64,000 bases of DNA, taken from Macrostomum lignano. Its lineage: Eukaryota. Position 1 is the first letter of the stretch. The number at the start of each line of letters is the position of its first letter. The notes beneath the pieces were generated by a model that saw only the letters and a list, made by a program, of their open reading frames with translations, did no database searches and was not told the DNA's origin. Below, piece after piece: positions 8,635 through 22,473 of the stretch. Position numbers and translations under genes: made by a program. The stretch lies in contig NIVC01000938.1 of NCBI GenBank assembly GCA_002269645.1, positions 1 to 64,000 on the forward strand. Reading direction: 5' to 3'.

Positions 8635-11600
8635 TTAAACCAGCGCAAAATCTGGCCAAAAGAACCAAGACCTCCAGCTCTGATCTTTGTCCTGCACTTT
8701 TAGCAGCTGGCTGCCCTCCATGAAACAGCCGCTGCACACGACAATCTGGCCTTTGACCTGGCAGAGACGCTCCAGACCCTGGGCCATGGTGTCGCGATCC
8801 GGGGCGTAGAGCTTTGCTCGGCGCTTCAGATAAGAGATGGCTGCGAAGTCGTGCAGACGGGCCATTGTGTAAGCGGCATTGTTGGGCAAGGAGCGGAACA
8901 CCTGCATAGGGAGATGCATGTGTAGAAGTCTAAAATCTATGGAGACCATAGACACGGTGCACATTCTACCACACAATGCGTGGCTTAACAATCTACGAGC
9001 TATTGAAGCCATAGGCACGGTGCACATTCTACCACACAATGGGTGGCTACAATCTTCGAGCTATTGAAGCCATAGGCACGGTGCACATTCTACCACACAA
9101 TGGGTGGCTACAATCTACGAGCTATTGAAGCCATAGACACGATGTACACTCTACCACACAATGCATGGCTACAATGTATCGAGGAAATAGACACGATGGA
9201 CATTCTACCACTTTGTTTTCAATCTATTGAACCGAGACCACTACCATTTACAACTGAGTGCAAAGTTTAGAACAAATGTATTTCTCTGCCGATTAAACAG
9301 CAAAATTTCCCCCTAAACAAACCTCCTGCATAATTTGCGAGTTCGACCTGGCCTGCGCGCACCACAGATTCCACACCGCGGCATCGCCCGGGTCAGAAAT
9401 GAGGGCCTCTTTCTCGGCCGGCGGCACATCCAGATGCTCGCACCAAAGAGCCATTCGAAGGCTACGAACGAAGCCGACGTCTTCAACACGAACGGCGAGT
9501 TCGGAGTTGCGCCAGCCGAGCAGGGAGTGATCGGCGATTCGAGCGCTGCCAATGATGGCGACTCGATCGTCGGCAATGAGCAGGTTGCTCTGCACGTAGA
9601 TCTCCTGAGCCAGCCAGCCGTCTGGAAGGCGATCGAATTTTTGCAGGCAGCAAACGCTCAGGTACTCGTGCGGCGCAATGTGACGCTGCAATAGTCGATG
9701 CGTGAGCGAGTCTTCGCCGCGGAATATCGTCTGTAGAGAAAGTGCATCTGCTTTCGGCTGGTGTAGTCGCCGCGGGAGCCGCTCAATAATTGACCATCGT
9801 GTCGAGGAAACAACGGAATGACGATGTACACCTTGAATGGCTCGCCCCTGCTTCGAGCCTGTAATAGGAAATGAAAATTTTGTCCACGATTTTTCAGTAT
9901 CGATTAGGCACCAACGCGCGTTCGATAGTTTTGCCCCAGTAGATTAAAAAAGTAAATTTTTGGCTCCTATTAGGCGCCCACCAGGAGACAATCCAGCCCT
10001 CCCAATTGGCGCCCATCCGGGAGATATGGGCTTTAGCACCAGGGGCTTTAGCACCAGGGGCTTTAGCACCAGGGGCTTTAGCACCAGGGGCTTTAGCACC
10101 AGAGGCTTTAGAACTAGGGCCTTCATCGCCAGGCGCTGAAGCACCAGGAGCGCCAGCACTCCATGCGCCAGCATTGACCTTCACTCTATTTGAAGCCTAA
10201 ATTTATCAAGAAAATCCGGCACACAGAAACATTACCTGTAAAATCCGCTTGTACAGATAGAAGCTAATCCTATTCTTCACTGTGACATCCGTTGGCCGAT
10301 TGCGACCCTGGGAGATGAACAGCTCGTTTTCGATGTACACGAAGCGCTGCGCCTGCGCGATGGCGCTGTAGTACGCCAGCAGGACGCTGTTCTCTTCAGC
10401 GTAGCGACTTGTGCCACCCGACCAGCGACCCAGCGACCTCAGCATGGACACCTGGCAGGTGTGCAGTGCGCGACCCTGGCCGAGCCGCTCCATGCAGTTC
10501 ACGAATTCCTGGGGCCGGGTACAGGGCGAGGAAACAGGAATAGAAAGAACCGCATCATGTTGGAGGCTGAGTAGGTTAGCGGTAATCGAGTATGAATCTG
10601 TCAAGGTAGCTGGGTTTCGATTCTGCACTGGACTTTGAGCTACTCAAAATTGAGCTACGTCAAAAGTTTCGTCAATTTCCTCACACAAAATATGTACAAA
10701 CATATAAATGCAATAGCTTTAAAATCAAAAGGGCTAACTCAAAATGATTATTCACAATTTTACATCGAAATTGAAGTTCCTCACCTCATCTTCCACCAAA
10801 AGTTCGGACTTTTTGCCTTCCTGACGACGAAAGTGTTGCTGCTGTTGTTGTTGTTGAGGCGGCAGCAGCAGCTGCTGCTGTCTGGCGGCCGCTTCAGCCG
10901 ATACGAGTCTCCGCAGTCCGGTGGTGTCCTCGTCCTCGTCTCCCACGGTGTCGCCGACTCCGGCGCCTGAACGCTCGCCAAGATTCAAAAATAGGAAATT
11001 TATTTTCGTCTTTGCGCTGGACAAGTTGTCGGAATCTGTGTAGACGGGCAGGTCGCTCAACGGGTGCAGATAAGTTCGACGACCGACGCGGGTCTCAATG
11101 TCGTCGAGGTCGTGATTGGCGTAACACCGGGGAGCCAGCAGCGGTAGGTTGAGTAATTTCGTGGCCTGTTCGTAGCTGGTGCAGACGCTGTACACTTTTC
11201 GAACTATGATGAAGGGAATAAAAAGTTTTATGCAGCACACTAAGCAATCTTGCAATGAGAAAGATGCTGTTGGCTGTATTATAAAACCTTTAACCACGAT
11301 TAGACGATTGTTTATAGATACAAACTAGTTGCAAGTGTGCTTTCAGCTGTGTCGAAAATAAAATCGATGTTTGTGCCCATTCGTCAGATCTCTCAGCTCC
11401 CGTTGGCATCGTCAGGCAATTCGACAGTCTCGTGGGGTCTCGTCCACCAAATACTCCCTGCTTGATTTTAACCGCATGGATGTCAGGGCGGCAATCATTG
11501 CCCTCTCAGGATATGGCTAATTCGCTAGACATAGGCTTACTCGGAACAGGCTCACCTACCCAGATCTCCCCGACGCTTTCAGGCCCGAGAAACTAATGCC

Positions 11601-20600: not shown

Positions 20601-22473
20601 ACAATAGCCGCCAGGGGCTTTGGGCGAGGAAGCAAGCTGTCACAGCTTATTCCCTTGAATCCTGAGCATAAAGACGGATACGCAGGCAGGCTCAAAAGGT
20701 GTGCAGTGGCCCCCCGATGGTCTCATCGTCACTCGTCGGGCATGTACACATTCTGCGCTCCGGTACAACTTTCCAACGTTGATAGACTCTCGAACGTCTG
20801 TTTATTGTAAAAGTATTCAGCCAGCTTCGGAGTTGACACTCATGGGTGCGAAACGCATGGAAAGCACCAGGCAAATTCGAAAAGTTCGACGCGAGAGATG
20901 GGCGAGTTAACCGTTGAGCTACTGACTGAGCGGACCCTGACATGACGCAATCCGAGCTATCTTTCGTCACGTGGTTCTACACAACCAAACTGTGAAACGA
21001 CTCGAACCGTCTTGTAGTTTAGCTATACATGTACACACGTATTATAGGAACAGAAGCATTTTAGTAGTAGAAGCTTACCATTCGACATTTTCGAAGCAAC
21101 TTATTTATGTCTTCCTACAATTGGCATCAAAGGTGACAAGTGCATGCAAATCGTGTAAATATTGAAGCAGAACTCAAGTCTTAAACTGCACTCACAGCCA
21201 AGCTGAGCGTCAGAGTATCTATGGAAGCCACAGCAGTGTCCAAAGCGGCTAAATTATCCACATTCAGCTGCGGATCCATGAGCGCACTGGCCACTATCAC
21301 GTTCAGTTTGATGATGGATTTTTTCAATTCGGCCGGATCTTTAAAGTGCAGATCCCACTGCACGTGGCCGCCGTAGCAGGCCGTGAGTCTGCGTGGGTTT
21401 GCAGCGGGGGTTATAACTGTCTTAAAGTAAACAGTAAAAAGTAGTTGCATTTTACTACTACTACTACTACTACTACTACTACTACTACTACTACTACTAC
21501 TACTACTACTACTACTACTACTACTACTACTACTACTACTACTACTACTACTACTACTACTACTACTACTACTACTACTACTACTACTACTACTACTACT
21601 ACTACTACTACTACTACTACTACTACTACTACTACTACTACTACTACTACTACTACTACTACTACTACTACTACTACTACTACTACTACTACTACTACTA
21701 CTACTACTACTACTACTACTACTACTACTACTACTACTACTACTACTACTACTACTACTACTACTACTACTACTACTACTACTACTACTACTACTACTAC
21801 TACTACTACTACTACTACTACTACTACTACTACTACTACTACTACTACTACTACTACTACTACTACTACTACTACTACTACTACTACTACTACTACTACT
21901 ACTACTACTACTACTACTACTACTTCGAGTCGGACTACTTGTAACGACTATGCTGTTGATAAATAATGTAATGCTAAAAATAGCTTGCCTCGCAGTCGCC
22001 CCCGAGTCCAGCTGTTCCACAGGTTGTTCATCATCGCTGCTAGTTGAGTCTCTGCGCCGACCGAAATGTATAGGAGGATGCTGCTGCCGATGCGGACTTT
22101 GGTTATTCTTGTGGAACTTACTGGTCGAGTTGTTTATTTTTCGCTTCTTCGCTCCAGCGCCGCTGCCACCGCCGTTGCTGCCGCCGCCAATTACATCGTC
22201 TAGGTCGCTGGCACCATCCCCTTGAGCTGCAAAGTTGCGATGCACGTACACCAGAGCCAGTTGCGATTCGTATGGCAATCCCAAGCTAGACTCGTTGAAA
22301 TTGTAATAAAAGTCCCAGCCTAAGTGACAGTCCTGCTGCGCCTCACGTTCCCGTTGGAACTGCTGAGTGTTGGCCTCAATTTGTTGGCGGAGCTGCTCTC
22401 GACGCATCAGGCTGGCGTCCGACAGGTTGGCAACCCGTCTGGGCTCGCGCACCTGCGGCTTTCTCCATGGCAT
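8635..22473 (-). CDS. PX-PH-phospholipase D (PLD1/2-like) protein with both HKD motifs degenerate; multi-exon
   Basis: Exons match PLD1/2 blocks in order: PX (EFLGISRLSFI, ~20430), PH (19386-19772), FGSFAP (~17740), YMYAVADAIDSAATEIWICANRLSPEVHLRRP (~17400), motif 1 CHNEKLVVVD..SAVDLTWGVWD (16610-16750), PRLPVHS..GARDAARHFVERWNF (~11960-12100), LRSLGRWSG..YIENELFIS (~10240-10460), FKVYIVIPLFP (~9810), motif 2 IYVQSNLLIADD..GSARIADHS..RNSE (9323-9690), last exon VFRSLPNN (8635-8901). Two apparent 1-nt frameshifts are present. The 5' end is tentative. Confidence 0.85.
8941..9210. repeat. ~61-63 bp minisatellite, ~4.5 copies, in last PLD-like intron
   Basis: Repeated CCATAGGCACGGTGCACATTCTACCACACAATGGGTGGCTACAATCTACGAGCTATTGAAG. 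Confidence 0.9.
10027..10110. repeat. 15-bp tandem repeat (GGGCTTTAGCACCAG)n, intronic
   Basis: About 5.5 units within intron 9859-10236 of the PLD-like gene. Confidence 0.9.
15145..15392 (-). mobile_element. CORE-like SINE, second copy (internally shorter)
   Basis: The reverse complement reads GGGGTTGTAGCCTGGTAGTTAGAGCGTCAGACTC...GGTTCGATTCTCGACCCACTCGGAACAAGTTGTGTCCTTGAGCAAG...GGACTGAACAGCCGTACGCAGCCTTCAGATG...CATATCTGGCCCAAT, homologous to 3644-3958. Confidence 0.8.
21453..21923. repeat. (TAC)n/(GTA)n microsatellite, ~157 perfect units
   Basis: Uninterrupted trinucleotide run of about 471 bp. Confidence 0.98.

Follow-up and report, generated by a model that had tools for sequence, protein, structure and literature searches.

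A candidate phospholipase D pseudoenzyme with a PH domain from a flatworm, Macrostomum lignano

A stretch of 64,000 nucleotides from the flatworm Macrostomum lignano (contig NIVC01000938.1 of GenBank assembly GCA_002269645.1, positions 1 to 64,000, hereafter the window) carries on its minus strand a gene of the PX-PH phospholipase D (PLD) family, to which PLD1 and PLD2 belong, in which both catalytic HKD motifs (HxKxxxxD) are degenerate. Its sequence points, with a probability that we put at roughly 0.55, to a non-catalytic, lineage-specific and fast-evolving PLD pseudoenzyme paralogue that kept its coding capacity through most of its history. The gene, referred to here as gene C, would be a third divergent paralogue of the PX-PH (PLD1/2-type) family in M. 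lignano, with two canonical paralogues, A and B, at other loci. A preliminary description of the window, made from its letters alone, had proposed a catalytically dead PLD that has been kept. The loss of both catalytic histidines, of the motif-2 lysine and of the GSxN asparagine agrees with this proposal, as does a pattern of change unlike that of an old pseudogene, whereas the PX domain that it included among the retained parts could not be demonstrated.

Catalytic motifs and predicted fold

Six-frame translation recovered both degenerate motifs at the positions given in the preliminary description, upstream of a stop codon at 8635-8637. Motif 1 reads NEKLVVVD at exactly 16693-16670, within the translation HFCHNEKLVVVDQKVALLSAVDLTWGVWD (16705-16620), and motif 2 reads QSNLLIAD at 9592-9569, within YVQSNLLIADDRVAIIGSARIADHS, which starts at 9598; the surrounding six-frame translations are HFCHNEKLVVVDQKVALLSAVDLTWGVWDTSYH and YVQSNLLIADDRVAIIGSARIADHSLLG, respectively. 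Both catalytic histidines are replaced (H to N in motif 1 and H to Q in motif 2), and the lysine of motif 2 and the asparagine or asparagines of GSxN are also gone; the lysine and aspartate of motif 1 and the aspartate of motif 2 are kept. In addition, GGxD is changed to SAVD, GRWD to GVWD, PRMPWHD to PRLPVHS, ENQFF to ENELF, GSANINDRS to GSARIADHS and DWW to ANR. The conserved C-terminal ...P..VWT is replaced by WPDFALV and a stop (protein end, SWRSWFFWPDFALV), and this tail has a predicted local distance difference test score (pLDDT) of 25 to 31 in the AlphaFold model. The SAVD, GSARIADHS, PRLPVHS and WPDFALV readings had been listed before and are all present in the translation. Neither the two intact HxKxxxxD motifs of the PLD1/2 subfamily nor its conserved C-terminal tail, which is needed for activity, is thus found in gene C, and its Pfam PLDc and PLDc_2 scores lie under the cut-offs of these families.

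The extent of the change was assessed at 80 positions of the alignment with conservation of 95% or more among 90 canonical PX-PH PLDs. Of these invariant residues, 76 survive in paralogue A, 75 in paralogue B and 58 in gene C. The residues lost from gene C, 22 in all, cluster in the active-site motifs and also touch DWW; the changes include H113N, G127S, G128A, R135V, W184V, D186S and Q279E, as well as F280L, H398Q, K400N, N415R, N417A, R419H and D426N. In the HKD mechanism, the phosphatidyl-histidine intermediate is built on one histidine, and the other serves as the general acid. Since both are lost, along with the lysine of motif 2 and the asparagine of GSxN, the canonical chemistry of PLD is excluded, and it follows from established HKD chemistry that a protein of this sequence would neither hydrolyze phospholipids nor carry out transphosphatidylation by the mechanism of the family.

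The similarity of gene C to PLD1/2 is nevertheless far beyond chance. A 559-aa concatenation of its conserved blocks matched PLD2 (6ohm, E = 2.2e-74) and PLD1 (6u8z, E = 3e-67) in a phmmer search of the PDB, and these matches span the whole catalytic domain, with conserved regions I to IV in order. The structure prediction that the preliminary description had called for gave a PLD fold: the AlphaFold model of gene C (predicted template modelling score [pTM], 0.81; pLDDT, 72) reached a template modelling (TM) score of 0.80 with the catalytic domains of human PLD2 and PLD1 (6ohm, 6ohr, and 6u8z) in Foldseek. In this model, the bilobed PLD1/2 catalytic fold is kept.

For the part upstream of the catalytic domain, every open segment in the six frames of the window was scanned with a profile built from 70 canonical PLD N termini. 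The PH core was matched at 19841-19389 (E = 2.9e-8), with a score of 36.5 bits across two exons that contain RW and TLDCETP, and tblastn with Anolis PLD2 also hit the first PH exon (E = 2.7e-5), although a Pfam scan of gene C detected neither PX nor PH. The same six-frame scan found the last PX helix, EFLGISRLSFI (E = 0.026, 10 to 13 bits), and the FGSFAP linker in the right order. The architecture supported by these readings is a PX remnant, then a PH domain between PX and catalytic domain as in the PLD1/2 subfamily, then a putative pseudo-PLD domain. Of the PX and PH domains earlier described as kept, the PH domain is therefore supported and the PX domain is represented by its last helix. 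The phosphatidylinositol 4,5-bisphosphate (PIP2)-binding region was likewise partly kept: the arginine-bearing helix ARHFVERWN is present in ARDAARHFVERWN, as the preliminary description had it, but the lysine-rich stretch after RWNF reads FARHDAVRM in place of FTKTTKAK. Poly-Q, poly-D and poly-G tracts, also described before, were found in open frames at ~10.85, 12.33, 14.65 and 18.85 kb.

Ancestry and selective constraint

In a HMMER search of 1.84 billion representative sequences, the nearest relatives of gene C were two other PLD families of M. lignano, found as the paralogue search suggested earlier had intended: paralogue A (Mlig002054, PAA89145.1/A0A267GT09), with ~43 to 44% identity, and paralogue B (Mlig010321 and others, PAA50367.1 and PAA80745.1), with ~39 to 41% identity. 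Both HKD motifs are intact in A and in B. Two UniRef gene models of M. lignano, P0001 ("Phospholipase D," 358 aa) and P0033 (451 aa), are 100% identical to exons of the window. The lineage signatures HQL, FIC, DLxWGxWDT, LLIADDRVAIIGSA and SELAVRxED are common to gene C and A/B. Upon neighbor joining, gene C was placed as sister to A plus B with a bootstrap value of 68%, a weak placement, and its branch from the shared node (0.74) exceeded those of the canonical paralogues (0.31 and 0.40), so that gene C evolves about twice as fast as A and B. Gene C would have branched off from the A/B lineage before A and B separated from each other and shed most of their introns. Long loops of poly-Q, poly-A and acidic sequence also occur in A and B, one of them at the same site as in gene C; the low-complexity insertions are therefore a trait of the lineage and not a novelty of gene C, contrary to their earlier interpretation as new interaction surface.

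Intron positions were compared by mapping the gene structures of paralogue A (L002), a Lingula PLD2-like gene (L003), an Owenia PLD (L004) and mammalian PLD2 (L005). Every homology-supported junction of gene C is GT-AG, and four introns match exactly, in position and phase, those of Lingula, Owenia, mammalian PLD2 and/or paralogue A. These lie after WD..H (phase 2, donor 16605), before VF.xLP (phase 0, 9323/8901), before the W of RWLFV (phase 2, 20115/19536) and at SNRH/L (phase 2, 19390/19229), the last in common with A; two PH-domain intron positions are identical in C and A. The other catalytic-domain introns of gene C are 2 to 8 codons off the ancestral positions. Lingula, Owenia and mammalian PLD2 have 22 to 23 introns, whereas the active paralogue A (Mlig_3_7 NIVC01000163.1, gene 2001-20084) has undergone strong 3'-biased intron loss, with only 7 introns and its last (3') 513 codons in one exon. 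Since A has lost nearly all of its catalytic-domain introns and gene C keeps or shifts ~6, gene C represents an old intron-rich lineage. An origin of gene C as a recent copy of A or as a retrocopy was ruled out by the ancestral introns that it keeps and A has lost.

The coding sequence was then examined for signs of constraint. No stop codon occurs in the 574 homology-supported codons of gene C. In a simulation of neutral decay, 0.05 or more substitutions per site left a <5% chance of finding no stop, at ~10% amino acid change, whereas gene C differs from A at 57% of amino acid positions. Retention of the consensus residue in gene C climbed with site conservation from 12% to ~72%, as it does in A and B, and the difference between columns of high and low conservation at which A and B both carry the consensus was significant (Fisher P = 0.006). 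By the Nei-Gojobori method, the comparison of C with A (pN, 0.39; pS, 0.65) gave a ratio of nonsynonymous to synonymous substitution (dN/dS) of ~0.36, a rough value with dS near saturation; a ratio near 1 would have spoken for a plain pseudogene according to the preliminary description. The neutral substitution pattern of a pseudogene was not found, and the rate acceleration is only ~2-fold. These data speak for a sequence that was still translated as it diverged, and the combination of lost catalytic residues with a fold and frame under purifying selection is that expected of a pseudoenzyme.

Several observations weigh against this reading, among them the near-saturated dS and the low bootstrap value given above. 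No orthologue of gene C was found in the HMMER search of 1.84 billion representatives. The PX core was detectable neither with Pfam nor with the profile of 70 N termini, and the exons previously put forward for it had negative scores. The Mlig_3_7 annotation is transcript based (PMC5730564), and it contains A and B, but two protein searches returned no protein from it for gene C, which is weak evidence against strong expression. The only two gene models of gene C are fragmentary and come from the earlier ML2 assembly.

Two possible lesions were also identified, with no stop codon and no lost GT-AG at the supported junctions. One C is missing at ~9733 (TACAG, compared with the TACCAG implied by MHFLYQTIF in P0001), which breaks the frame in the conserved MHFLY/QTIFRGE and had been overlooked in the reading frame of the preliminary description. 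As the surrounding block aligns without a gap to all PLDs, this is a frameshift and not an intron, and if real it would truncate the protein before motif 2. It is absent from P0001, which is otherwise identical to the window exons; the frameshift is therefore a discrepancy between assemblies or between copies of the same locus, and we infer either an error made in assembly or, the genome being neopolyploid, a lesion that one copy acquired very recently. The frameshift site (9725-9740) coincides with the position of a phase-2 intron after ...HFTY that is present in mammalian PLD2 only, and the window sequence there, TTTCTCTACAG, resembles a splice acceptor; this was put down to coincidence, as the coding sequence runs on unbroken on both sides. 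The second is a Cys-rich insertion of 56 aa before motif 1, between HPTDPSTG and TEQLHFCHNEK, which is absent from all other PLDs. No frame-compatible GT-AG pair that would remove the Cys-rich stretch was found, so that the in-frame insertion is the sole canonical solution. It may be genuinely coding or may be a lesion; its coding signal is weak, and it could represent read-through of a damaged intron, a further point against an intact gene.

That gene C is instead an unprocessed pseudogene is a real possibility, which we consider somewhat unlikely. It would then be a now unexpressed or recently disabled duplicate, in which the substitutions, the frameshift, the insertion and the unrecognizable PX domain all reflect decay. 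The three subgenomes and much redundancy of M. lignano (PMC10733133, PMC5730564) would favor such a fate, as would the frameshift in the window copy, the missing protein in the transcript-based annotation, the undetectable PX domain, the insertion adjoining motif 1, the accelerated rate with 22 of the 80 invariant residues lost and a perfect 157-copy microsatellite in the presumed 5' part. However, the simulation permits no more than ~0.05 neutral substitutions per site in a sequence free of stops, conservation follows the importance of the site, all supported junctions (four of them ancestral) are GT-AG, dN/dS is ~0.36, and a gene model identical in all else lacks the frameshift. Any decay can therefore be only very recent and cannot explain the absence of the catalytic residues, whose loss must date from a time when the frame was under selection.

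Very improbable in our estimate is an enzyme with changed chemistry, in which a pocket rebuilt with N/K/D from motif 1 and Q/N/D plus Arg from motif 2 would support another activity or ligand binding with turnover. The lysine and aspartate kept in motif 1, the aspartate kept in motif 2 and the kept fold would allow it, and the PLD superfamily offers precedents in members that turned into nucleases or work on other phosphodiesters, PLD3 and PLD4 being exonucleases; a PLD3 structure was among the Foldseek matches. To our knowledge, however, all characterized HKD enzymes, nucleases included, need the motif histidines, both of which are absent from gene C, and the second-shell residues are eroded as well, which suggests a pocket released from constraint. 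Hardly credible is an artefact of sequencing errors or chimeric assembly of a normal PLD gene: the assemblies come from PacBio data on a redundant polyploid genome (PMC5730564) and differ by a single base here, but the codon changes are in frame over the whole domain, identity to the closest paralogue is ~43% rather than short of 100% by a few errors, the same protein sequence was independently predicted from the ML2 assembly, and canonical paralogues exist at other loci.

Exon map and neighborhood of the locus

The exons, junctions and candidate segments of gene C are listed in Table 1. Between the motif-1 exon and the exon with PRLPVHS, the open segments of the loop region had codon-usage scores of 15 to 44, and several in-frame GT-AG chains are possible. 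A search of 5.8 billion proteins with 1,429 aa of candidate N-terminal and loop exons gave no match at an E value of ≤1e-5. A perfect (TAC)157 microsatellite (21453-21924) is in frame with the open reading frame (ORF) from the proposed start codon and would encode poly-Ser, and a 33-nt tandem repeat at 22784-23361 (17.5 copies, 98% identity) is found a short way upstream of the same ATG. Introns of gene C contain tandem repeats of 61 nt (8946-9183), 15 nt (10028-10148) and 23/45 nt (17485-17600). An Rfam scan of 6 to 27 kb gave no match.

Table 1. Exons, splice junctions and candidate segments of gene C, listed from the 3' end of the gene (window positions)
Feature	Position	Strand	Basis or remark
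Last exon, VFRSLPNN...WPDFALV, with stop codon (8635-8637)	8635-8901	minus	100% match to ML2 model P0001
Junction, GAG/GTTTGT...TATGCAG/G	9323/8901	minus	Ancestral position, phase 0; also in Lingula, Owenia, mammalian PLD2
Exon with degenerate HKD motif 2 (QSNLLIAD, GSARIADHS) and 1-nt frameshift at ~9733	9323-9858	minus	Alignment to PLD1/2
Exon EFVNCMERLG...YIENELFIS...YKRILQ, conserved region III	10236-10508	minus	100% match to P0001
Junctions	10785/10508 and 10236/9858	minus	Splice scores 8.6 and 9.5
Exon LLNLPLLAPR with acidic/poly-Q insertion	10785-11203	minus	Same site as insertion in paralogue A
Exon with poly-Q, GLDYWN, PRLPVHS and ARDAARHFVERWN (PIP2-binding helix)	11946-12696 (putative 5' boundary)	minus	
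Loop region, four coding-like open segments	12700-16323	minus	~16323-16090, 15813-15573, 14835-14373 (including poly-G), 13816-13448
Exon with degenerate HKD motif 1, HFCHNEKLVVVD; SAVDL for GGxDL, GVWD for GRWD	16605-16738	minus	
Donor of motif-1 exon	16605	minus	Ancestral intron position, phase 2
Exon GTPNVHVLLHPTDPSTG, then in-frame Cys-rich insertion (49 aa)	16844-17041	minus	ML2 model P0033 continues through it
First catalytic-domain exon, AQWYLDGG...EIWICANRLSPE...; DWW changed to ANR	17187-17447	minus	
Linker exons (18602-18287 and 18131-17725), acidic/basic, low complexity, ending FGSFAPSRSGVK	17725-18602	minus	100% match to P0033
Second PH exon, EVTLDCETPLKRRVLVNTIRT, with acidic poly-D linker	18830-19229	minus	Profile alignment
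Junction	19390/19229	minus	Phase 2, same position as in paralogue A
First PH exon, WLFVADTFLGIMNIHSKVIEEIMLFDTSFVV...	19390-19536	minus	Hidden Markov model E = 2.9e-8; acceptor 19536 ancestral, phase 2
Exon with last PX helix and junction (AICEFLGISRLSFI, 20455-20420) and S/A/P-rich linker	20115-20552	minus	
Putative 5' exons and candidate start ATG (22473) of the preliminary description	20695-22473	minus	No similarity to PX profiles

Other genes and elements were observed around the locus. A two-exon paired-like homeobox gene (7184-7676, minus strand) lies ~1 kb downstream of the stop codon of gene C. An apparently intact Ty3/gypsy-like long terminal repeat retroelement (27639-31732, minus strand) comprises a gag ORF with a zinc knuckle (30923-31732) and an overlapping pol ORF of 1,118 aa (protease, reverse transcriptase, RNase H and integrase). 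In a DIRS-like retroelement (34237-38037, plus strand), an ORF for a reverse transcriptase (35124-36833) precedes one that is tyrosine-recombinase-like (36904-38037). Further along, a ubiquilin-like gene (53348-55995, plus strand) has a ubiquitin-like start and STI1-like Met/Gln-rich repeats and is followed by a long open tandem repeat (55851-57143, minus strand).

Comparable proteins and significance

With human PLD1 and PLD2 (6u8z and 6ohm), gene C has in common the catalytic fold and collinear regions I to IV, a PH core with the RW motif, the RHF(I/V)xRWN helix with its PIP2-binding arginines and two intron positions. It differs from them in both HKD motifs, in GGxD, GRWD, PRMPWHD, ENQFF, GSANINDRS and ...VWT, in an unrecognizable PX core, in its long low-complexity insertions and in the 56-aa insertion before motif 1. 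Vaccinia virus F13 is a PLD-fold envelope protein with a degenerate HKD motif that functions without classical PLD turnover; it was among the fold matches (TMq of ~0.40) and, as a member of a distant viral subfamily without PX or PH, serves as an analogy only. PLD5 and the FAM83 DUF1669 family have PLD-superfamily folds without catalytic residues or PLD activity and are thought to be scaffolds or anchors (PMC6008594, PMC8864472). Unlike gene C, they have no PX-PH region, PLD5 being of the transmembrane PLD3/4 type and FAM83 a single pseudo-PLD lobe, and they are vertebrate or metazoan families of established conservation, whereas gene C is so far from one species. In a literature search for a described PX-PH pseudo-PLD, PLD5 and FAM83 alone were returned.

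This agrees with the preliminary description, which knew of no such animal protein, yet gene C is not unique. A survey of degenerate motifs among 319 fetched sequences of at least 800 aa identified P0083 (L001; Logan contig SRR32924703, gene 277-3516), a lophotrochozoan PX-PH PLD of 1,079 aa with no intact HKD motif. Its motifs read HNEK, with the same H-to-N change as in gene C, and HSN, with the same K-to-N change, together with GSAKIQD (N changed to a basic residue) and PRMPIHD (W lost). In contrast to gene C, it keeps the motif-2 histidine and a Pfam-detectable PX domain. P0083 is a full-length spliced mRNA and is therefore expressed. Its nearest relative is 50% identical, and no close orthologue of it was found in the database. 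P0083 grouped with the Lingula anatina PLD2-like protein P0066 (bootstrap, 100%) and not with the flatworm gene; an ancient pseudo-PLD clade in which P0083 and gene C would be orthologues was rejected, gene C grouping with the M. lignano paralogues. One degenerate motif was also seen in other PLD1/2-type proteins, namely, WAHNEK in P0167 (Logan, 834 aa), YVDSK in P0146 (from the amoebozoan Soliformovum irregulare) and YINSK in P0236 (Lingula anatina XP_013418896.1). The motif-1 H-to-N change occurs in three unrelated sequences.

If gene C is a pseudoenzyme, it would be retained without catalysis and would work by binding membranes or phosphoinositides and by contacting other proteins, for instance in competition with partners of the active PLDs or as a scaffold for them; roles as a sensor, a scaffold or a dominant-negative regulator are purely inferential. 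The fuller proposal, that gene C is an expressed and selected PX-PH pseudo-PLD, the first such protein in an animal, that serves as a non-catalytic regulator or membrane scaffold beside two active PLDs and that loss of the HKD histidines is a recurrent route, falls just short of an even chance.

For PLD1 and PLD2, lipase-independent roles are debated, including scaffolding and functions like those of guanine nucleotide exchange factors or GTPase-activating proteins. If unexpressed, gene C would be just another duplicate in decay within a neopolyploid genome full of redundancy. If the pseudoenzyme reading is true, a natural paralogue with the fold and the PH domain and without the catalytic residues would separate the functions of PLD without any engineering, in a flatworm amenable to RNA interference and transgenesis that has two active paralogues alongside. 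The few known pseudoenzymes of the PLD superfamily (PLD5 and FAM83) would then be joined by one of the PX-PH type, and together with P0083 gene C hints that catalytic loss in PX-PH PLDs recurs.

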